In this document: piece after piece, positions 1,693-64,000 of the stretch | Position numbering within the stretch: the stretch's first letter is position 1 | Layout of the letters: each line of letters begins with the position of its first letter | Source: Podarcis melisellensis | Lineage: Eukaryota | Length of the DNA: 64,000 nt | Reading direction: 5' to 3' (one strand) | NCBI GenBank assembly: GCA_964234715.1 | Contig: OZ174288.1 | Notes under the pieces: model-generated | The model's input: only the letters and a program-made list of their open reading frames with translations | What the model was told of the DNA's origin: nothing | Databases searched by the model: none | Position numbers and translations under genes: made by a program

Positions 1693-1717
1693 GAACCCAA
1701 TTGCCCTCAATTCTTAC

Positions 1718-1926
1718 CAGCAATTTCCCAGGAGCCCTTGCAGGATGTCAGAGGGCCGAGGTGTCCGGAAAACAGACCACTTGACTGAACGGTCCTTGAA
1801 GATGCTGCAGTTGATTTCATGAGGCCTCAGCCACTGCTTCACTCGCTGCTGGACACTGTCCCCTTCGGGGAAGCCGACTGACTTGGGCCCTGGAGGGAAA
1901 CTGTCATCCACAAAGTTGACCTTGTT
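1718..1926 (-). CDS. CAPN15: Calpain-15 exon encoding the start of the CysPc catalytic domain, including the catalytic Cys
   Basis: [69 protein letters not shown](W). Acceptor ttttgtatctgcag|AAC at 1927/1926 is phase 0, matching the upstream donor. Donor TG|gtaag at 1718/1717. Length 209 nt; catalytic Cys codon at 1720-1722. Confidence 0.97.
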
Positions 1927-2051
1927 CTGCAGATACAAAATTTAAGAAGCCCAAGGGCATCCTTGTTACTGATATTCAGTTCCACATGAAAGCTGGGGCT
2001 GCTGCAGCAACTGTTGGACACATGCTGGCAGTCTTACTTTAGAGACACGCA

Positions 2052-6342: not shown

Positions 6343-7782
6343 CTCTTGACAGAAGGAGACAATGTTTTCCCAGAGGGCTTTGGCCTCCCCTTCATCTGTC
6401 TGCCGCCGCTTCTCCACATGCATACTCTCCCGGCGCCTGAGTGGCTTGGCGCCCTTGCGCTGCAACAGGTACCCCTGGGGAGTGTGGCAGGCGACACAGT
6501 GCTTGGCCTTGAACTCATTGAGCAGCGTGCAAGCCGGGCAAGGCCACTGGCTGGGCCTTTCTGGGGTGACAGGTGGCTGCGAGGGGAAGAGGCGGGCCAC
6601 TTTGCGGGCCGAGGGGGCCTTAGAGCTGCAGGATGGGCAGCTGCCTTTGTCTGAGCCACACTCAGGGCATTTGAGAGCCAACTCTCCCTGTGCGCCGTGT
6701 TCCTGGAAGCCATGCAGCTTGGAGGAGCCGCAGGCCTTGCACTTCTGAGAGGCTGTGGGGTTCTTCAACGTGCACTTAGAACAGGACCAGGTGGTGAAGT
6801 CGGGGCTGGATGGACCGCAGGGAGTGAAGCGCACAGAATCGCCAGTCAAGTCAATGGTGTCACTTCCCTTCTGGGAGCTACAGGCCTCGCAGGCGCCAGC
6901 TCCCGAGGTGTTGAGGAGGGAGCAGGTGCTGCACTTCCAGGGCGATGGGCTCACCTCCATTTCTTCTTCCAGCACGCTCAGCCGCTTTGTCGCCATCAGC
7001 TCCTGGAAGCGAATGGCCTTCTGCACAGGTGCTGGTGGGGAGGCCGGCTGGGAGGTCTCAGGCACCGGTGGCTGCAGCTGGGGGGGCACCTCTCGGCGGC
7101 TGCGGGGAACGGGGTTGTTTTGGAGGCCGGGGGAGAAAAGGCTAAAGCTTGGCATCTTCTGGCTCTCTTGCTCAATGGTGGCTGCACCTGGGTTGGCAAT
7201 GGGATGGCTCTCGGGGTTGTCCGTAGCAACGCTGGGCTGAGGGGTGGTGGGTGCTATGTGGAAACCGGCAGGAGCAATGACTTCAGGGACGACCAGCGCC
7301 TCTGGGGGAATCTTGGGCAGAGAGAGCTTGCGGGGGCCTCCACAGGCCGAGCACGAGTTGGCCATTGGGGTGTTGTGAAGAGTGCAGCGCTGGCAGGCCC
7401 AGCCATCCTCCAGCCCCACTTCCTCCGGGCTCTTCTCCCCAGAGTCCTCAGCAGGGCTCTCGGCCTTGGGAAGTTCCTCCTTGCAGGTGCCCTTGGGCTC
7501 CACCAAGGTGGTGGGCTTTGGCAGGACTCCGTTGATGATGGGTAGCGGGGAGCCCCCGGGCCCAGGCTCAGGGGTGAAGCCACACACCTCGCAGGCCTCT
7601 TTGCCCAAGAAGTTCCGGAAGGTGCAGCGGGCGCAGGCCCATTTCTGCTCTTCTACACTGAGGCGCAGGATTTGGTTGAGGTCGGGCTTCTGGCGTGGGG
7701 CCTCGCAGATGGAGCATTGGCGCTGTCCTACGGGGTTCAGGAACGTGCAGCGGGTGCAGGACCATTCCCGCACAGCGGCCAT
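6343..7782 (-). CDS. CAPN15: Calpain-15 (SOLH) main N-terminal coding exon: RanBP2-type zinc-finger region, 480 codons
   Basis: Translation MAAVREWSCTRCTFLNPVGQRQCSICEAPRQKPDLNQILRLSVEEQKWACARCTFRN...RRRESMHVEKRRQTDEGEAKALWENIVSFCQE matches vertebrate calpain-15. Acceptor ttgcctttctttcttgtctgttgcag| gives an exon start at 7804, 22 nt before the ATG at 7782. Donor GAG|gtgagt at 6343/6342 is phase 0. GC/CpG-rich relative to the introns. Confidence 0.97.
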
Positions 7783-9604
7783 AGAACCAGAAGAGTGGGT
7801 GTGGCTGCAACAGACAAGAAAGAAAGGCAACCATTACTTGACATCGTAAGACGGGAGCAGAGGGAAGTGTGCTTCCTGCTACTTACAGCATGGGGTCACC
7901 CACAGCGCGCCCATGGGGGCAAGGGTGCCCCTGAGTTCTTCTCCTAATGCCACCAATATCTCTGAAACCGCCCCTCCCCACAACAGCCCCTTGGATCATG
8001 AGGTGGGGAAGGATACTTATGGTCTTCCCTTGGAAAAAATACCAGCACTTTCTCACTTCCTCTTTCAGTTCTATGTACTTTCTAAGGCTCTGATTAATTG
8101 TACTGAAGCGTCCAGAGGGGGTGGCGATCACAGCATTCATCCCAAAATCCACATATGCCCACAGCCCTAGGAAAGTCGGCAACTCCCAACTTATAGAATG
8201 GGATCCAGACTAGATGTTCCTTTCATATCAGGTGGCCTTCTGCATGCAAAGCATGTACTCTAACGCCAGGCCCTTGTTTCAGGGCAATTCCTGCACAGCT
8301 CTTTGCACTCATGGAACACACAGGAGCTTGCCAGGTCAAGGAGGGACAAACTGGAAGCATCTGCCCTTCCTTGCCCTGCAAAGAAGCAGTAAACACAATC
8401 TCCCTTACACAAATTGCAAAATCTGCCCTGGTTAAGTCTGTACTTCTGCCTTGCCAATTCAGGGGACAAAGCAAGAGAAACCAACTACACTTTCAAGTTA
8501 TCAGCTGCTCAGCTTACATGGTAAGCAGGCTGCTACCTTACCCAACAGTAGCAGTTTTTCTTGTATGCTAACTTTTACCAGTGATGCACTTCTAGGGGCA
8601 TACTTGTAATGGGCAAGTAAACAAGTGCTGCCCTGCTTTGTTTTACCCCCATTCTGAGAAGGAAATAGGGTAGCTACAGTTGAAGAGTACTTAAAATGCC
8701 TAGCAGCCAGCATCAAATTGTTAAAAGCCAGCCCAGCAGAAATCTGAGCACACACCAGAGCATCAAAGTACAAATTTATAAATATCTGGGCTTGTTGGAT
8801 CCCAAATTCAATAATACTTCACATTTTCTTGCTAAAAAGAAGAGGGGAAGTTGCCTTGGGCAGACTATCCATTGCAAACTATTTATATCCAAGACAAGGG
8901 CTTGGATAGTGAAAGAGTTAATCCTTGGCTCAGAACTGTCCACTCACTTTACTGTTTCTTTTGGAAAAGGGTGTAGTTCAGGGGTAGAGCACTTGTTCTG
9001 CATGTTGAAAGAAGTTTCCAGGTTCAATTCCCAGTATTTCCTGGAGGAAGTGGGAATGATCTTCATCTGAAAACCTGAAGAGTCTCTGCCAGTCAACATA
9101 ACGTAGACAATGCTAAATCGAACCAGCTGTCTCACTAGAAGGCAGCTTTCAACATTTCTATATACCACCAAGAAAATCTGCACTTATATTTGCACAGTAT
9201 GTCTCTAGAAATCAGTTTATGGGGATCAAAAAGTGACAATTGGCCCCTTAAGACGAGCCACTTGGCCATTAATTTGCCAACCCCCTTCCCTCTATGGAAA
9301 CAGCTGAAGGAGGCAAGAGGGCACAGGAAAGAGTATCTTTTTCTTCCTTGATTCTATCTCCTTGCCTCCACCTCCCCCCTCCCCTTAAGGGCTCTCGGCC
9401 AGCAAAAGTAATCATAGAATGACATTTCATAGGTTTTTAGCCCCGCTTCTTCAGCGTGAGCATTAGCAGAGGGGTGATTTTGGGGAGCAGCTCTCTAGGG
9501 TTTCAAGGCCTGAGTCTTTCCCAGCCTACCAGGTGATGCTAGGAATCAACACTGGGTGCTTCTGTATACTGAGGAAGGTCTATGACTGGGGAAGGTCTAT
9601 GACT

Positions 9605-13906: not shown

Positions 13907-14106
13907 NNNNNNNNNNNNNNNNNNNNNNNNNNNNNNNNNNNNNNNNNNNNNNNNNNNNNNNNNNNNNNNNNNNNNNNNNNNNNNNNNNNNNNNNNNNNNN
14001 NNNNNNNNNNNNNNNNNNNNNNNNNNNNNNNNNNNNNNNNNNNNNNNNNNNNNNNNNNNNNNNNNNNNNNNNNNNNNNNNNNNNNNNNNNNNNNNNNNNN
14101 NNNNNN
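13907..14106. other. Assembly gap (200 N)
   Basis: Run of exactly 200 N; true size unknown. Confidence 0.99.
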
Positions 14107-39469: not shown

Positions 39470-42055
39470 TAGATCTTGATCAAGCCATAAAGAAGTACTC
39501 CATACCACCATCTCAGCTGCCTTGAAATGCAAACTGAACTCACCCAATTATTTATCATTTTTATTTAAAACATATACACCATCAATTGAAAAATGATATT
39601 CTACCACCTGAATATGGAACTTAACTTTGGAAGATGAGTACTTAACTTCGAACTACAAGCTAATATTGCCCAAACTGACTTCTAATGTCTCCGCACCTAT
39701 TGCCCCCTAAAACTGATCTCCAGCCTTGCAAATATAAAGCCTATTGCTTTTCTCCTTACTTCGGTTTTCTGCCTCACAAGGAATTTGTGTAGTCCAACTA
39801 GTACTAAAGACAAGGAACAAATAGATGTCATATTTTCAAACAATGAGGAGAGAAACCATTCCCCCCCCCCATGACTTATTGATTTTCTCAGCTACAGTAT
39901 GAAGTAGGTTCAGACATGGACTATTCCAGATTCACACAGGGAGCTTTATGGCAGAGTTGGTAACTAAACCTGGGTTTCCATGTTCTTATATTGACACTCA
40001 AGCCACACCATCACACTGGCTCTCTATGAAAACAGTACTGTATACTGTGTCCACCATGATACTGAACTCCTTCAAAGAAGGGCAAGATCAAATCATAATA
40101 AATGAACAAGCAAGCCACCATGAAGGCTAAGAATCAATTAAACCTCCCTGTGATCGTTGGCCTTAACTTGTGCAGGTAAGATGCATGCAAAGTTCATGTT
40201 ACATCAATAGTTCTGCTTTGATACAATACTCAGACAAAGCAGCTTTTTCTCTCCCCAGCAGTTGTGCTAAACACCTCACCCACAAGTAAACTAGTCTTAG
40301 ATGCATTTATAGGCAGCTTTCACCAACTGTCAAAGCCAAGCAGGTAGCAGTTTTAAATCAAAACTGAAGTGTCCCACAATGCCCTACGTCAGCACAAAGG
40401 TTTTTAAGCACGCAAAACTCGGTATTTGGAATTGCTAGCAGAAGCAACTCATGGAATCTGAAGTGGTTGTAAAAACAGAGGACAAAACTCCTGGATTCTT
40501 GCTAAAACTTATTGCTGTTTGCTACCCTGTTGGCTATAACCTATAATCCATGCTTTCCCCATCTCAGTTCTCAGTATTCAAAAGTGTATTTCTGTAGGAC
40601 TTGTCACTTCATCTGTGTCCTGCTTCTTCCTCTTCATCACAGGAAGTTTTAAAAGCTCAGTCAAAAGGGAAAGCAATACAAAAGGCACATAATAGGGAAC
40701 TAGCAGCAGTTATACAAAACTTCCTCTTAATATTACCAACATGCTGGTTACATGACACAAAGCATGCCAGAGTTGCAACCACTGAAACACTGGCAGGAAA
40801 TTCAAGACCAAGCTGTAAAGTGCAAAACTGTGGGATTACCGGTAATTTGCCACAGACACTCCTCCAAGCCTGTTCTAGAGAAGATGCAAGCAGCAAAACT
40901 CTTGGAGTTTGCACCAACAGGCAAGAGGCCACAAGCAACAGGCATGAGGCACACAGCACAAAGCAAATGTTTTTCAACCCAAGCAACTCAGGGACAGAAG
41001 CAAACTGCTGTTTTTAAACAGATGGCAGTCTCCATACAGGCTAAGGAAGGCACACAGTCATTCAACAGGCAGGAAGAAAAGCTATAAAAAGCAAGCATTA
41101 ATCAGAGGCTCCAATATTCTTAGCACACACAACACGGCAGCTTTCAACAGCCAAGGCTCCCAGGGCAGCACACTGTTAGATGCTTTCGACATACCTCTCA
41201 ACCTAAAAAAAAAAGGCCCTAACCATGAAGGCAAACCTTCCTTGGAGGGAGTGATGAGGGGAACAAGCATTTTTTAATTATTATTAGCCAGCCGTTTGAT
41301 TAGTAGGTTTCACAAGGGGTAAAATCTTGAGAGACTCCACAGTTCTGCCTTCTCAGGGGCATTTGTCATGAAAACAACACTTCTAGATATTAATGGTTTA
41401 TGGGGACCTTCTAAGTGTATCCTTTCCAATTTGAAGATAAATTCTGTTAGCCTTGGCTATGACAGGTGGCATTATCCAAATCTAGACCTGGAGAAGATGT
41501 TCTCCAACACAGGGTCTCTCAGGTCAGTGGCTGTAGTCTGGGGTGTTTGCCTTAGAAAATGGGGATCTGAAACCTAGGAGGCAAGAATTAGTTCCCTGGC
41601 CATGAACTGAAAAATTGACTTGATTGATGTGGATAAATTCCCCTTCAGGCTGGGCTTAACTAAGATTTCAGCTAATGACTACTTCAGTACTGGAGGGTAG
41701 GCGTCAAAACGCTCCACACAACTTGCAGTTTTTGTGTCTGTGAAAGCAGCAAGTTGAGGATGTGACATTATTAATTCAGTTGCCCCACTGTCTCAATGTT
41801 AAAAGGAATTATTTATTTTTGCTTTGGGGGGTGAATGACGTCATGGATATTGGTCAATGAACAAAAGATAGGTTTTGCTTCTTGTTGATACAACTATGGC
41901 AATTATTGAAAGCTAGCTAAGATGAAGTTAGTGGAAATTTTGGTGTGGCTTCAACTGGACCATGGCTAGAGCCTACAAGACCCCAAAGTATACAATCCTA
42001 GGTTTCAAACCGATCTGAGAGGTATGAGATCAAGCTCTTTCCCTTGCTTTCTTAC

Positions 42056-42231
42056 CTTCGTGCCCGGTGATTCACGTGCTGATGCTGACGTGTTATAAGG
42101 GCACTTTCCCATACAGGGCCACTGTGGCTACTCCTATACCAACTTGCAGCCAGATGCCCTGGGTAGGTTGGGCCAGTGAAACCATGGTCCGACTCCGTCT
42201 CGGCGGCCAGCGATGAGGCTGAGCTGCCCAT
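42056..42231 (-). CDS. CAPN15: Putative upstream coding segment of CAPN15 (N-terminal extension starting MGSSASS), inside predicted exon 42349..42056
   Basis: Acceptor ctttcctttctccag|TG at 42350/42349 follows a long pyrimidine tract. ATG at 42231 is in a strong Kozak context (gctATGG). 58 codons + AG precede donor AAG|gtaag. AG plus the first C of exon 7804 makes AGC, then HTHSSGS-M in frame with the main ORF. Locally CpG-rich. Confidence 0.65.
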
Positions 42232-42682
42232 AGCTCCCCTCAACCCTGGCTGGGCCAAGATTTATAGGTTAGGTCCAAGCCAGAGGCATGAGCAGTCGGC
42301 CCGCAAGGGTGAGGAGTTGCAGCATGGACTGGCGTAAAAGTTCCCAACACTGGAGAAAGGAAAGCTGGTGCTGATTGAAAAAAGAAAAAGAAGAACACAA
42401 AACAAGAGGAAAGGGAGAGGAGAGAGAGAGAAAGAAAGAAGTAAGGTATGAATTAAACCAATGAAGTGACATTTCTAAAAGCCTGTTAATAACAGAGGTG
42501 GTACCCTAGCCTACCAACAGGGCACACCTGATTCAAAGAAAGCCAGCCTATAGAAACTTAAATGTGTGAGGGGTCAGAAGAAGAGAATGGAAGATGCTAC
42601 TGTGGCTACATAATATAAAGGGCCTATTCCCAAATTCTGTTGGCCAATTTAACCATTCTTTCTTCCGTTTGCATGTGGAAAC

Positions 42683-42997: not shown

Positions 42998-43194
42998 GGG
43001 TAGCCAATGCAAATATAAGGAGGTCTGGTGCTCTTGTATTAAGTAATATGGGGAACCAAATGCAAATTTTCTGGTAGCATTTATAAAAATATTGCAATCA
43101 GTAAAGGGCCTGCACTTAGAACTAACAAAATGTCTCACATATGATGGATAATGAGTAGAATGGTCTTTCTCCAACATCTTGTGATCATGCATAT

Positions 43195-43347
43195 GCCCTG
43201 AGGGATAGCTAAGTTGGTAGAGCATGAGACTCTTAATCTCAGAGCCATGGGTTCAAGTCCCAAGCTGAGCGAAAGATTCCTGCATTGCAGGGGGTTGGAC
43301 TAGATAATCCTTGTGGACCTTCCAACTCTATGATTCTGTGATTCTAT
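43195..43347 (+). mobile_element. tRNA-Lys(CTT)-derived SINE with CR1 3' tail
   Basis: Head TAGCTAAGTTGGTAGAGCATGAGACTCTTAATCTCAG...GGGTTCAAGTCC resembles tRNA-Lys(CTT); tail TTCCTGCATTGCAGGGGGTTGGACTAGAT...CTCTATGATTCTGTGATTCTAT. Confidence 0.85.
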
Positions 43348-44905: not shown

Positions 44906-47680
44906 GCTCTCCTGATTATCTGCTTAAGAAAGCTGGAGAGGCCTTCCAGATGGAGATGTCAGTCGCCAACCAGGCATCCTGAGCTTTCCACATGTTCACA
45001 ATTGGACCCGCACCAGTAGCAAAACATGCCTGGTGCCTGGCTAATGTCTAACACTGCCACCAAGCATCTAGCTTAGCCACATAAGTAAGCATTTCAAGCA
45101 GGCCCACATTGCTTCCATTTTCCTGACTCACACCTTAGTGAGTCAAACTTTCTGAAAATAAGGGCAGCATCAGGGATTAAATAGGTATGTGAGAAAAGGC
45201 AGGTGCCTTTTCTTATGTGGGGGCGGGGGAGAAAACCTTTAGTGTCAAGATTTGTGTTGGAAGCGAAAAGAGCAAGCCAACAATTAGTACAGTAAAAATA
45301 AAGAAATGAGGAAGAGAAGAAAAAATGCCACTGTTGAGCTTATTCAGTTACCCACCAGGATTTGGAGAGAGAGGCAGAAATGAGCTGTGGTAAGAAATGA
45401 GCTATAAATAAGAGAAATGTTCAAGCAATAGAGATTCTTTGCAATGAAAGGGGTTGATACAAAGCTGCTCACATGGAAGATTTTCAACGCCAAGGCTGTT
45501 CCCAAAGGGAACTTGGTATATAGTAATTCTCACTCTTCAGTCCATATAACAAGTGCCAGTCCGATAGATGGCTGACACCACAATTGTGTGCATTAAATGG
45601 GCTTCATTTAAAAACAAGTTGTTTTTCTTTACTGTTCACAACAGCTTATAATACGATGAGGCTGCCAGAAATCTTTACCCTCCAGGCTACTTCCCTCCCA
45701 GCATGCACATGGCAAAATTTGCTCCTTCCACTTCTACTGCCAGCAGATGGAGCTCATGGGCAAATATGGGCCTGGGAAATGAGTCCCAACATCTTCCCAC
45801 CAGGGCACTGGATCTAATACCTGCGTACCCACAGGCAAAGCTATAGCTCTCTCAACCTCTATTCTCCCAACTTATTTCATCACTATATTTTTTACTAGTG
45901 GCTACCACCCCTGCCTACCCCTTTGCGCTTCCCCCACACTTGACCAAATCTCCTCCCCTTAAAACTCACCCACCCTCTTGACTGTCCTTCCACAGCATGC
46001 TCCAAGTCCATCCCCTGGTAAAGGAAGTAAGAGGTGCAAAGGGCCTTCCCTGCTACTTTAAACCTTGCCACAGGCGTGTTCAATGGAGGCAGGAGGTACT
46101 CCATACAGTAGCTTGATAAACCATTGGTGTGAAGCGCCTCCCCTCTCTCCATTAAACCTCACTGCAAGCAGGTTTAATAGAGGAGGAGCTTCACAGCCTG
46201 TCGGCTGTTTCTCATGCTGCAGCTGGCAACCACACAAACTGCAGAGCATGACAACACTTCCAACATTTCCATGTGTGTAAGCAATATATGGCTTGGGTGG
46301 GGTTGTTTTTCAAAATTAAAAGCAACTTAAAATTTTAATTAATAAATAAATAAATCTAAAGAGAGGCTAACAGTAACCAGGAATGTTGTGAGGAAAAACA
46401 GGATAAAATGGGGCAAGGAAGAAGAACCTTGAGTTTCTTAGAGGAAAGGCTAAATATAAGCATAGTAAGCAAACAAGGCACACAAAGTGTGAGAGCACGA
46501 CTCTCTTTTCCTTTTCCTGTTGCACAGGAAAGGACGTATTCTACACATTTCATTACAAAAAGGAAGAGAGCAATGAGCTTGGGTTTTTTGTTATTCCATA
46601 CACTGGATAAGAATTATTAGCCCTTTTTTGTGAATGAGCACTTGGAAGCTACAGCACTCCCTTAGACTCCTGTTACCACATGGAGGAAAAAGAGTTCTCC
46701 CACAAAGGCACTACTGATAATGAATTGATGTTTCAAAATTATTACTTTTTGTCCCATTGCACTAAAAGATGAAGACAGTGCCAACCCAAGACATTTGCTT
46801 CCTGAAGAGAGGTCCAAATGGCACTTCTAGTCATGGACTGCTGGATGCAGTGCAGAGGAGAAGAGGGAGGCACCAGCTGATGGTGATGAGTGGTCAGAGG
46901 GACAAGAGGTTTAGTGAGCAGAAAGAGGCTGTGGCAGAGAGCAGTCCAGACTCTTGAGGCTGAAGAGAAAGCTGGAGAGGAGGGGGGAAAGAGGCAGTTG
47001 GGGTGGGCTGCTGAAGAGTCCAGGTAGTCTCTCCCTCCTGCTGCGACCAACTCCTCCCCCTAACCAGGTCTCCTAGAACAAGCAAGAAAATTGAAAAGAG
47101 CAGGGACTGGTTGTGTGCAGATGCAGTTTACAACTGCTCAGGGAAGACTCTGGAGGAGGAGGAGCCTTATAGAGTGTTAGGAAGGTGGGGAACTTCAGTC
47201 CTCACAACCACCTCATTGGAGCAAGACCTGCAGGGAAGAATTGCTAGGATCACTAGTCCTGTTTTGTTTCAGTTTCTTGGGGGGGGGGAGTTAATTGCAC
47301 TGACAGAGTATTGTCTATTTCTGACCTATGCTTGACTCTGACTTCCGACACCTCCCCTGATAGGGTCAACACTTTAAGAAGTCATGATACACCAGTTTGC
47401 CTTCACATATTCTACTCTACCACCACTATGGAATCCCATTAAGAAATCTATGTACCCTACTGGATGGCAGAGCAACCATGGACAAAGATCCCCCAGGGAC
47501 CAAAATGAGTTTTTCCTCCTGACTCTCAAAATAATAAAAAGGATATAGTGTGTGGAAACCCAACTTCCACCAACAACAAGCAAGAGGTGGTGGCTCAAAC
47601 AATGGTTAAGCCTTTCTAGTGCTATACCATACAAAAATAGTTCAAAACCAACACTTTCACAAATCCCTCAGCACTCTTAC

Positions 47681-47877: not shown

Positions 47878-50800
47878 CTGCAGGACAGAAGGGGAACAAG
47901 AAGCCTGCTTTAACATTGCTGAGAAAAGCTCTGCAAAGAGATGAGAGCTGGGTTCAGGAAGAACAGATCTATAAATAGGTACAGGATAACCCAGCTAAGC
48001 TGCAAGTCTCAAATACCGTTCAGTAATACAGGACTACTTTCCAGGCCATGTGCTCCAGGAAATTTGCTTCATCTAGTCAAAAGCATAATGCACAGAAATT
48101 CCAGGTGTGAGAGTTACACTGTCCAGAGGTTTCCCAAACTTTGTTATAATAGACCACTAAGTCTGCAAAAGTGTTGGAGATGATTAAATAAAAAATACAG
48201 TCTCACTGGAGGAATCTCACTCTTGCCTCCAAGGGCAAGAAACAGAGGTCAAAAGACCTTAACATTTCTAAGGTCTACTTTGACTCACAACATGGTTTTA
48301 CAGGTCCCAGAGAGAGACTAGAGAAGAAAAAGTAGTGGTGGTGGGAGAAACCACTTGCCTGCAGAACTGATACTGAAACACTATGCTTTTCTGGCTCATT
48401 GATTTCTTCCCACATTTATATCCTGACCTTTCCCCAAGGACCTCAGAGTGGCAAAACCACAGATTTGCCCCCATTGATCCTCACAACCACACTGCAAGTT
48501 TGGCTAGGCTGAGAGACAGGGCCAAGATTACACAGCAAGTTTAAAAACTGAAGAAGTAGTATCTGAGCCCAGTTCAAAACCAACAGTTAACCCACTGCTC
48601 CACACTGACTCTGGATGTTGTGTAAAGTGTCAAAGCAAACAGGGAAACAATTAAATGTTTGCTCAATCAAAACATATACCCAAGGTCATTTCACACATTA
48701 AGCTAGAGAAAACCAAGATTTGCCATGGAACGTGAAGTCACAGCTAACCTAATTTCCCTAGAAGTGTACTATAGGACATGTTTGCCATAGTCACACTTTA
48801 CACTTTTAAGGATGTGTGTAGACACACAAAGACTCGTATAATTCACCTGGGAGGTAAACTTCATATTTTAAACTTTAAACATTGCTTGCCTAACCCAGGA
48901 CTAGAGCGGAATATGCCAGCCTTAATAATGGTAATTTATTACTGGGTTTTCCTTCTAACTCATAAATCTTGTTCATTAAGATTGTCATACTTCTTCCATA
49001 CTTTCAAACACACCTATACAGTGGACTGTATTGAGATTGCCCATAACTGATTCAATTGGTTAAGGCAAACAACCCTATTTACAATGTTTAGCTAGCAAAA
49101 GAAGAGTGACTGAATGCACCATTTACTGCCTTTAACTAAAAATGGTCTGGGCAGAAGACCAGAACCACACTAAGTGAAAATTAGTGTGGCTCCTGTGTTG
49201 GGCTCAGGAAAAAAACAGGTCAAGCTCAGTCACGGGCCCACAGAGGTGGCCTTTCACAAGTCACAGAGCTGGTGAAGACCCTCAGTAGAATCTGCCCTTT
49301 ACATGCTCCCTCTCATAGGAAAGATCTCACCAATCTTAACCATGGTTAAAGATTGGCAGCTTTATTACCAGCTTTATAATCAGTGCTAACTGATATTTAT
49401 ACTTAATCAACATATAAAACCAGGTTTTGAAGCTGGTTAAAAATTCCAGTAACAGCAAACCACAATCAGTGCTAGCTATTACTAAAAACAAGTTTTCTGG
49501 AAATTTTAACCATTGTGAAGGTTGAGAGAGGAGGCAGGGGGGGGGAAAGGGTACATGCAACCCCACAGCCCAAGACCTTAGCCATGTATAAGAAAAAGCC
49601 ACATTATGTCTACACACCAACTCATTCTTTCAGCTCCCATTCCTCATCAATAAATTGGGAACAAGTCAACTTCCTATTGAACAGAATACACACACAGATA
49701 AGAACTATAAAGTTCCTTGCACACTAAAGCAGCAATAATAATTGGCTTCCCCCATCGTTTCTGAAGTATAAAGAACCTGTACCTGCTTGAGAACAAAAGC
49801 CTAGGGCTGTGTGTGCATGCTGGTGATGTTTTAATCGCAATCTACCCTCTGCCAAAAGAAAACCAACAGGTTAAGTAATATAGGTTCTAAGTAATTATAT
49901 GCCTGTCTCACTGCAGTTTGTGTGTTGATTTATTGTTTGCACAGGGCTGTGAAGATGAAAAACACCTAGAACAGTGCTGAGCATTATTCAAAGTATTGGG
50001 TTCAATGGCTTGCAAAATTCATGGGGACCAGAGGGGAGGCCACACAAAGACATGAAGTGGCAAAAATAAGATTTGCTAAGTATTTAACAAGCAATAATGG
50101 GAACTGCAGAAAACAGACACATAAACACATCTAAAGAATATCTCTGCATTAGGGTGTGGGGAGGACCAACCCATCCCATATAACTAAATACATCACTGCT
50201 TGAGTTAATCTAATTTGGGAGACCCAATGCTGCAACAACAATGGTAAAAGACAAATGGGGGATTTAACTAATAGAAACAAATAGTTAAGCACCTATTTTG
50301 CTTCCTTTTGTGGTTTTAACGCATAATTACTACGTTTCAAGTGTTAAAGTTAATTATGCCTGCAAGAGCATTTCTAGAACAAATAAACCGATCTATTATG
50401 AAGCAATTTACTCCTTCCTATTCTCTGAACCATTTCCTCCCTCCTTTCCTTCCCCCACACAAGCACTTACAACAGATTAGGAGAAAGGAGACAGATAGGG
50501 AAGCTCTCCAGTCCCATCCATGCAAGGGGCTCTTCTTATTTCCTAGACCCAAAAGAGCATCCACAAGAGGAACACACTTGATTGCTGCCACTGAAGTCCC
50601 CTCTTCAGACCAAGGCGGAAGCAGCAGCCAGCCCTCTGGTCTCTGTTACCACACACTCATCACTGATTACGAATCAAAGCGGTAACAAGCAGGCAGTACG
50701 GCAGGTCTTATTCGACTCTTCTCTACACCAGGACTGATTAAGAGCACCTGTGAGGTAAATAGATCACAGAGTTTGCTTATCCTGTATCCTCCAAGACGAG

Positions 50801-54665: not shown

Positions 54666-57600
54666 GAACCAACTTGCAATAAAACAAAAAAGGAAATTCT
54701 TATTAACACCTATAGAAAAACACTTTTGCTACCAATTTAGAAGCTGGAAGTTCATTATGAGAGCTAAGCAAGCCGCCAGTGATTAAACAGAATCCAATAC
54801 ATAATTTCAACAACAAAATAAATAAATACTGTAGAAGCCTGTGCTCTACTAAGCCAATTAACATTATTCCAATGAGGGACATCAGGGCACCTCATATTTT
54901 CCAGTTTATTAGCCAACTGTGCAGGGATTTTCTTATTTTAGTGTGCTGTTAACGAAAGTGTGTGTGGGCTGGCATAGTTTGGCTCATTAGCTACCCGGCA
55001 ACAATTTAAGCAGCTCCCACACATGCACACACACATGCACAAAGAGGAGGAGGAGGAAATAAAACCACCCATGGCCATGCTATTTAGCAGGGGTTCCCCC
55101 CTGCAGCTCAAGGATTACATTCAGCCCTTGGCCTAATTTCATGCAGGTGGAGGAAGCCTGGAGGAGAGAAGCAAGGGAGTAAAATAGAGGGAAGAGCCAA
55201 AACGGACGGACTGATGGTGGGGAAGAAGCTCTCTGCAAGTGACCAAAAAACTGGCAAGAATGGGGGGAAATGGTGGGGAGGAAAAGCCCTCAGCAAGTGA
55301 TCAGTTCAGATCTCTGACAAGAGTGAACTGTCCCTTGAAAAGAGAGGTAGAGAGAAAAGAAGGCGTTAGAAAGGAAAAGTGGCAGCCTGCACACTTTTAG
55401 CTCTGGTGTGACTATCTGCCAGAATACAGCCTGCATTAGAAAATTGGTTCCCTACCCTACACCGTCTCTACAGGGATTTCATAAGCTAGAAATCTCAACT
55501 TCTGGAGTTTTTTGCTCCTGTCCCTTATGACACACCTTCACTGTTTCACCTGGTCGCAGAAGAAGCAGCCATTAAATCATCTCCATAGCTACAAATGTTT
55601 CTTAAGTTGTTGAAACCAGATGCATTATATGATTGAAAGCTTTAATCTATGCAGTGGGGGTGTGCTATTAAATGCTACCAAGGCTTGACAGGAGAAGTCT
55701 TGTTAGGAGAAATCTTTGTACAAAAGAAAGCAACTAGGCCCTGCGTACTATGCTACTGCAGTCTTTAAGATCCATCTCAGGCTGTAACCCTATACATACC
55801 TGCAAAGATGTTGGTCCCACTGAAATGAACAGACATATACAGGATGGCACCATCGAAGTCCTACTTTGACCATATAACTCACATAGGTTCATGAGTTCAT
55901 CAAAACCATAAATTAAATTACATGACACCTAATGCCCAGGTGGCTTCCACTTCCACTGAACCACGATCGAACCCTGCATTCAAATGCAGCAATGATCTGT
56001 GATCAAGCCAGCAACTTTGAACCACAAACCATGTTTGAAATAGGCTAGCAAGCCAGTATTTATGTGAGGTATGGTTGAATGTATAGTTTTATACAATATC
56101 TGGACTGAAAATAGTTATGGCAGCTACTCCACTTTGTTCATTTCTTCATATTGTTGTCAAACCGATAACCCTGAAGACAGGCAAGCCTACTCAGTTCCTT
56201 GATGCAGTTCGGTCTTGGTGCACTTCTCCTGCAATAACAGCACAGCTCTCATCTGCTACAACTGGGTGCTGATTGGGTAAGCTACAGACCTCCCCATCTG
56301 AGGCTGTGCCAGTCTGTTCAGAGCAGCATTGTTGCTATTGCACATTCACAGCCAAGAGATAAACATGACTAAGAGCCAGGCACAGTCTCCCTACAATATC
56401 TGCTGCACTGAGTTGCCCATGATTCAGCATTCAGGAACTCTGTACCCTGCCAAGAGCAGCCAGGGCAAAAACACAAGTAACAAGCCAACAAACAATGAAG
56501 CCAAGTATCAGTGAATCTGACTCCAGATTTGGCCTTGTAATGTTAAGGGATATCTATGACTACTACACCTTTTATTTATTTTTTACACAAGATACTGCAG
56601 TAGGAAATCAGTTTTCCTCACTGTAGTTATTTTACTTCTTTTGTTTGTTTTATTACTTTTTAGCACATTGTTTTATTCTGGACTGTAATACAATTTGTTT
56701 TTTTAATAAAATAAAAAGTACGAATGAAAGGCAAACCTTCACTTGCAGCAAATACAGCTTCTCTCTAAAGAAGGCAAGTTAGAGTTTCCACTTTTCACTG
56801 AGGTAGTAACACTCTCTCTGGGCTACACCGTTTCAGACTGAATATCCTCTGTACTGTACACAGAAAGCTAGCATGCTATGGAGAAAGATTTGGCATGCTG
56901 GCTTTCTATTTGCAGGAGTATTTATGAATGCTGGAGCAGTCAGTCATGCGACAACACACACCCCGTCCAGTCTAAAGTGATCCAGCCCAGACGCAAGGTT
57001 ACTATCTCAGTGAGAACTATGCCTCAAATACAGACTAGACTAGAGAGACAGACCAGGGTCTAAATTCCAACTAGACCAGGAAACTAAGTAGCCTTGGGCT
57101 GGCATCTGTTTCTCAAGATAGCCTACCTCAAGCAGTTGTTTGTGAGGTTAAAATGGAAACTTCGGCTGCTTGAAAAAAGGGTGGACCAAAATGTGATAAA
57201 TCATAAAAGTGATACTTTGGACCATGACCCCAAGCTAGGGAAGGACAAAGTATTGTACAAAACTAGGGAAATATTTCATTGCTGAGGAGCTACAGATGAA
57301 ACAGACATGCAGAAATTCAAATCTGTTGTTTTTCCCCTTTCTCACTTAAATTCACCCACAAGAGTAAAAGTAAATTAAATCTAACTTGCTAAATTCAGTA
57401 ATGCTATGCTTTTTCCAAGTCTCCAGAATGCAATATGATCTATCATCAGAAATGGTTCATCTCAGGTGCACTCGTGATCAGCATTCATAGTGCTGAAGTT
57501 TAGAGGGCAACATGACCATACATTATTAAGGAAGATAAGGAAAGCCAACATAGCAGTAAAAGGTGTGTCTTGTTCTAAAGCAGCACGGTGTTGCCAAAAA

Positions 57601-63886: not shown

Positions 63887-64000
63887 ACATACAGATATTC
63901 AAACAAACAAACAAAATATTCAATAAAATAGATATTCAAACAAAAGATATAATGAACTGAATAAAACAATAATGAAGTTAGGGGTCCTGGGTAATTTATT

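Follow-up and report, generated by a model that had tools for sequence, protein, structure and literature searches.

The minus-strand segment 42349..42056 is very probably the conserved first coding exon of a long isoform of calpain-15 (CAPN15), an exon that would be spliced directly to position 7804 and would supply the protein with a disordered, myristoylatable N-terminal arm. CAPN15, the vertebrate SOL calpain, is a calpain of calcium-independent appearance, and the domain scheme used in the field starts at its zinc fingers. The window (the whole stretch of Podarcis melisellensis DNA that was analysed, 64,000 nt) contains the zinc-finger exon and the protease core of the described protein, as well as the canonical Met, which in this lizard opens the sequence MAAVREW. 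The long isoform differs from the described CAPN15, which begins at the first zinc finger, by 66 additional residues and an MG...S start. An ATG at 42231 would add these residues ahead of the textbook start, 58 of them encoded by the exon and the other eight forming a linker that would be read from the split codon and from 22 nt that are usually treated as 5′ UTR. With its invariant Met, Gly2 and Ser6, the extended N terminus would be a substrate for Met removal and co-translational N-myristoylation, and the choice of 5′ exon would decide whether this polyubiquitin-binding protease carries the tail.

In a 2025 paper on CAPN15, zinc fingers at the N terminus are what marks out the family, and loss of CAPN15 leads to developmental defects of the eye and brain in mice and people (PMC12002525). 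A literature search found no article linking CAPN15 or SOLH with myristoylation or lipidation, or with an N-terminal extension. A gnathostome-wide N-terminal arm that is under purifying selection and has an invariant start of the myristoylation type offers a cheap, testable handle on the localisation and activation of CAPN15, and the principal product of the gene may escape constructs or antibodies that are based on the short form. As a discovery the exon is modest, since the isoform is already among the pipeline models of dozens of species. The functional idea is not of a new kind.

The extension exon and its place in the gene

The features of the gene in the window are collected in Table 1. 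A pyrimidine tract of about 90 nt that ends in ...tttctccag lies immediately upstream of the extension exon, and gtaaga follows its 3′ end, so that the donor reads AAG/GTAAG. The ATG at 42231 lies within GGAGCTATGG, with G at both −3 and +4, and is preceded by an in-frame TAA ten codons on the 5′ side; it begins a frame of 58 codons with 2 nt left over, and the exon thus ends in phase 2. The zinc-finger exon starts at 7804, where it is preceded by ...tgtctgttgcag, and the 22 nt at its start supply the rest of the split codon and run without a stop, as S-HTHSSGS, into the ATG at 7782 (MAAVREW). The long isoform uses this segment as coding sequence; for the short one it is 5′ UTR. The sequence-only reading had described this 294-nt exon with its acceptor, donor, start codon and phase, and had placed the 22 nt in frame ahead of the canonical Met; both descriptions hold on rereading the sequence.

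Table 1. Positions of CAPN15 features in the window
Feature	Position	Strand	Basis
CAPN15 extension exon, 294 nt (118 nt of 5′ leader, 58 codons and 2 nt)	42056..42349	−	sequence reading
Coding part, 58 whole codons; MGSSASS-type start, then a variable disordered stretch	42058..42231	−	identity to Elgaria
Pyrimidine tract and CAG acceptor upstream of the extension exon	42350..42440	−	sequence, cross-species comparison
Donor GTAAGA of the extension exon	42050..42055	−	sequence, cross-species comparison
First 22 nt of the zinc-finger exon; linker S-HTHSSGS	7783..7804	−	sequence, Takifugu comparison
Large exon with RanBP2-type zinc fingers, canonical Met (MAAVREW) onward	6343..7782	−	ORF, homology, Pfam PF00641 on matches
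Following CAPN15 exon, where the protease core region begins	1717..1929	−	tblastn with Elgaria residues 547-617, 97% identity
Short upstream ORF in the exon leader, 18 codons, weak start context	42269..42325	−	sequence comparison

The two exons are separated by an intron of 34,251 nt, which includes the sole N gap of the window (13907-14106). When the RefSeq calpain-15 of Elgaria was aligned with the window by tblastn, its residues 1-58 corresponded to 42231-42058 with 100% identity, residues 59-547 to 7806-6343 and residues 547-617 to 1929-1717; the linker of Elgaria differs from that of the window by one residue. By homology, no exon would lie between the extension exon and the zinc-finger exon, and the N gap would conceal nothing that is required. 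A direct join with no obligatory intervening exon, as the sequence-only reading had assumed, is supported by this mapping, by other RefSeq models and by a songbird RNA contig described below. The zinc-finger exon of the window is 87% identical to the CAPN15 of Elgaria and to that of Python. No CpG island was found anywhere in the 64,000 nt of the window, so that the promoter, and a non-coding first exon if there is one, probably lie beyond it; a search of the same 64,000 nt for tRNA genes also found none.

Conservation of the extension and its linker

The 58-residue peptide encoded by the exon was searched alone. A word-indexed search gave four matches and an exhaustive search of 1.84 billion protein representatives gave 16, with 11 at E = 1e-10 or better; orthologous peptides were matched at E = 2e-29 to 4e-10, so that the peptide is not a product of chance. 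Six teleosts, the pigeon (at 84% identity) and the skink Lerista (at 95%) provided the matches, and most are annotated as separate short "hypothetical proteins." In the first 18 residues the lizard sequence is the same as that of Ameca, and other teleosts have one to three differences. A 231-residue protein of Takifugu bimaculatus (TNN03953.1) runs from the peptide through the linker SHSHSPGS and MAAAV...EWSC... into RanBP2-type zinc fingers. The peptide is orthologous to annotated N termini of CAPN15. In the GenBank annotations of Lerista, the pigeon and the six teleosts, the first coding exon of CAPN15 is detached from the gene as a "hypothetical protein" with an unrelated tail. The capn15 gene of T. 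bimaculatus (CP034975.1) is divided into two gene models of 231 and 719+ residues, and the second of these contains Peptidase_C2 and CalpD_C.

Full-length CAPN15 models were retrieved by a search with a 785-residue fragment of gecko CAPN15. The start MGSSASS is found in 81 of the 119 models listed besides the query, although many database models are made by pipelines that may borrow each other's evidence. They include Elgaria, Python, four turtles, birds, marsupials, many placental orders, primates among them, and the salamander Ambystoma. Three rays begin MGTSASSIAADTE... (MGTSASS) and continue with a different tail. Where there is a single RefSeq model, as in Elgaria, Carettochelys, Cavia and others, it is the long one, and the gene model of the fin whale joins the extension exon to the zinc-finger exon in the same way. 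For dozens of species, RefSeq and unreviewed entries of UniProt thus already list the long isoform and its annotation is not new, which answers a question that the sequence-only reading had left open. Models named "calpain-15 isoform X1" or its equivalent, for example in Elgaria multicarinata webbii (P0133, 1151 residues), Python bivittatus (X1, P0134) and Chrysemys picta (X1, P0137), represent the same gene, exon and junction; compared with such RefSeq and UniProt X1 models the window shows no substantive difference and simply adds another squamate. Teleosts have a second, divergent group of "calpain-15-like" paralogues, in which the first finger reads QWACGCCTFLN and the models begin MP... 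and lack the MG motif.

Exon borders were compared among the loci of Ameca, Takifugu, Lerista, the pigeon and a GC-rich, mammal-like source, for which contig L002 provided the data in the exon, codon and start-context comparisons. The peptides of the GC-rich contigs L002-L004 have the forms ...DHGF and ...QPLRPRAR, as in bats and a ferret; they were not taken to be human, since all four of the retrieved primate models have the form ...DHSF instead. L003 and L004 served only as subjects of local BLAST comparisons. An exon end of ...CG[N]AG/GTAAG in phase 2 is common to the lizard, the bird, the two teleosts and the mammal-like contig. The exon lies in a block that is conserved with the pigeon (42015-42456 of the window, 76% identity) and with Lerista (84%). 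The tract and its end ...cctttctccag are kept in the pigeon, in a songbird and, more weakly, in the mammal-like contig; in Lerista the pyrimidine tract is present, but its end reads ...cctttccttcgg and has no AG. From teleosts to mammals, orthologous exons retain the ATG, Gly2, Ser6 and phase 2, the features on which the proposed isoform depends. Several other blocks around the exon are conserved between lizard and pigeon at 70-88% identity and in the same order (56266-56378, 54808-54994, 45270-45395, 47958-47998 and 40984-41204). Signals of an exon are missing from the block at 56266-56378, which resembles a conserved non-coding element and may be an enhancer.

The distance from the extension exon to the zinc-finger exon downstream is 8 kb in Takifugu, and there the segment ahead of the ATG of the latter has the same length as in the window, 22 nt, and encodes the same linker with synonymous differences. 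In fishes, sauropsids and mammals alike, genomic ORFs and gene models have the linker SH[ST]HS[PS]G[SP] ahead of the canonical Met, and because it is kept across these groups the supposed 5′ UTR of 22 nt is constrained at the level of protein.

The alignment of the extension took in 52 distinct sequences, and the invariance of residues was taken from an alignment of 38. M1, G2, S4, A5, S6, S7 and W41 are invariant in the 38 orthologues, and S3, L8, A9, T12-S14, H16-F18, R48 and Q49 are nearly so. In codon alignments of seven sequences, dN/dS was 0.08-0.28 in the 19 computable pairs out of 21, the remaining two being saturated in dS; over the first 18 codons, the comparisons with the window gave 3-9 synonymous changes and zero or one non-synonymous change. 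These ratios, which the sequence-only reading had proposed to obtain, show purifying selection on the coding part of the extension at the protein level.

The same data bear on two readings in which the exon would contribute nothing to CAPN15. In the first, the segment would be a pseudo-exon that arose by chance, or else a 5′ UTR exon without coding function whose conservation concerns RNA or DNA only, as might be suggested by the lack of a CpG island or promoter signal nearby. The peptide search, with E values down to 2e-29, the 81 of 119 models, a dN/dS well under 1 and the almost exclusively synonymous changes in the first 18 codons refute it, as does the maintenance of frame and phase over roughly 400 million years or more, and we consider its probability negligible. 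The second reading, in which the unspliced exon would yield a stand-alone microprotein of 59-61 residues or serve as a regulatory upstream ORF, draws on the presence of genomic ORFs of 59-61 codons ending in RR-stop in lizard, bird, teleost and mammal-like contigs and on the several GenBank annotations that give the exon as a separate "hypothetical protein." However, the RR-stop, which closes the unspliced frame in every species, is simply the TAA inside the consensus donor AG/GTAAG when it is read in phase 2. The tails of the separate "hypothetical proteins" are unrelated and not conserved. Conservation of the eight-residue linker is at the level of protein, lizard and fugu showing synonymous changes in it, and a transcript contig and dozens of models connect the exon to the zinc fingers. 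A microprotein is therefore very unlikely and was rejected, on the conserved linker, the junction in that contig (L008) and the origin of the stop in the donor.

Transcripts and the choice of 5′ exon

The extension exon and the zinc-finger exon were searched for separately, and RNA contigs were found in Logan. Contig L008 (997 nt), which is from a songbird as judged by its sequence, reads ...CGAAG/CCACTCCC...ATG across the exact splice junction, and its ORF runs from the MGSSASS start through ...HRLR/SHSHSPGS/MAAVREW into the zinc fingers. It represents spliced RNA, because 997 nt is too short to accommodate the intron. The junction to the zinc-finger exon that had been proposed from the sequence is thus seen in the RNA of a relative, and by homology the exon is presumably spliced likewise in P. 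melisellensis. At its 5′ end L008 continues 22 nt past the equivalent of the acceptor AG; the 5′ boundary of the extension exon (acceptor 42349/42350) is for this reason a prediction from the conserved tract. Genome-sized sequencing sets contained 76-100% of the words sampled from the exon, and a fraction of 0.72-0.24 was contained in fourteen small sets of contigs from related organisms, which are putatively RNA but may be DNA.

A squamate RNA contig, L009, has a complete ORF of 1107 residues and a different 5′ exon joined to the acceptor of the zinc-finger exon. This 5′ exon has an in-frame TAG four codons ahead of the junction, and the transcript therefore makes the short protein only. It had no match in the window by BLAST (43151-43299 was left out of the queries), so that a first exon of this type probably lies beyond position 64000. 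The sequence-only reading had suggested that isoforms are selected by inclusion of the exon, and a short-isoform contig with another 5′ exon fits this suggestion. In models of the caecilian, beaver, platypus and elephant, other, unrelated coding 5′ exons are joined in frame to the acceptor of the zinc-finger exon, and the linker is translated in these models as well; they may be real isoforms or pipeline artefacts.

Each of the seven species compared has a purine at −3 and G at +4 around the ATG of the long form, whereas the canonical ATG (MAAVREW) has T at −3. Because the upstream context is strong and the canonical one has this T, translation of transcripts with the exon should begin for the most part at the upstream ATG, and the isoform should be determined mainly by the choice of 5′ exon. 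The leader of the extension exon contains a short upstream ORF; lizards and birds share its ATG but not its peptide or frame. Its stop is 37 nt ahead of the main ATG in the window and 31-40 nt ahead of it in lizards and birds, and the ORF may act as a translational brake on the long isoform. Taken with the gene models, the songbird junction and the dN/dS values, the short-isoform contig supports the claim of the sequence-only reading that calpain-15 has an alternative long isoform.

The N-terminal motif and possible myristoylation

The start M-G-S-S-A-S-S fits PROSITE PS00008, with Gly2, Ser6 and no Pro7, and the pattern is found at residue 2 in 85 of the 87 long models with an MG start. All of the retrieved sequences have Gly2 and Ser6 without variation, including the rays, despite the different tail of the latter. 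No Pfam domain was found in the 66-residue extension. Structure was predicted with AlphaFold2 from the 38 orthologous N termini, with the Elgaria protein standing in for the spliced product; pLDDT was below 50 for residues 1-3, 7-11 and 13-57, the means by decade were below 50 through residue 60, and the two zinc fingers had values of 80-90. Since pLDDT is low and no Pfam domain is present, the extension is predicted to be a disordered arm with short conserved motifs.

Proteins in which N-myristoylation is set by the first coding exon or the start codon form a general class. The long isoform of CAPN15 resembles the isoform-specific members in that an alternative 5′ exon gives Met-Gly-x-x-x-Ser, and its other isoform begins Met-Ala and cannot be myristoylated. 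Many members that are stably bound to membranes have a second signal, in contrast to CAPN15, whose lipidation is predicted from the motif. A second membrane signal, either a palmitoylatable Cys or a polybasic patch, was sought and is absent from the extension: residues 3-30 contain no Cys, Lys or Arg. Residues 10-15 are acidic. Under the two-signal rule the extension would not be expected to provide stable membrane anchoring, and since no Cys or basic patch is nearby and residues 10-15 are acidic, myristate alone would give weak, reversible binding to a membrane or a partner.

On the pattern at its N terminus, we slightly favour N-myristoylation of the long isoform at Gly2. If this is true, the choice of 5′ exon would switch CAPN15 between a lipidated form tethered to membranes or partners and a soluble form, which would bear on the mechanism of activation and localisation of a disease-linked protease. 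A tenable but less than probable alternative is that the extension is translated and not myristoylated, its N terminus serving as a motif for a binding partner, as a glycine degron for turnover or as a regulatory arm for the fingers or the core. The conservation does exceed the needs of NMT, with residues 8-18 nearly invariant and W41 and R48-Q49 conserved, and the region past the motif is acidic, with no Cys or basic cluster for stability at a membrane. However, an invariant Gly2 and Ser6, even in rays, is the typical pattern of an NMT substrate, and the SOL calpain of a tick also starts MGSNAS.

In this model of the SOL calpain of the tick Haemaphysalis longicornis (P0131), MGSNAS stands directly ahead of the first zinc finger, which hints that the MG...S motif may be older than vertebrates. 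With MG...S starts in rays, in bony vertebrates and in at least one arthropod model, N-terminal myristoylation could be an ancestral and conserved property of SOL-type calpains, perhaps overlooked since the proteins in the literature start at an internal Met, although we would put the chance of this somewhat below even. We know of no separate exon for the MGSNAS motif in the tick. The tick protein, a single automated model, resembles the long form of CAPN15 in having both Gly2 and Ser6 and differs from it in that the first finger follows the motif with no disordered spacer of 60 residues.
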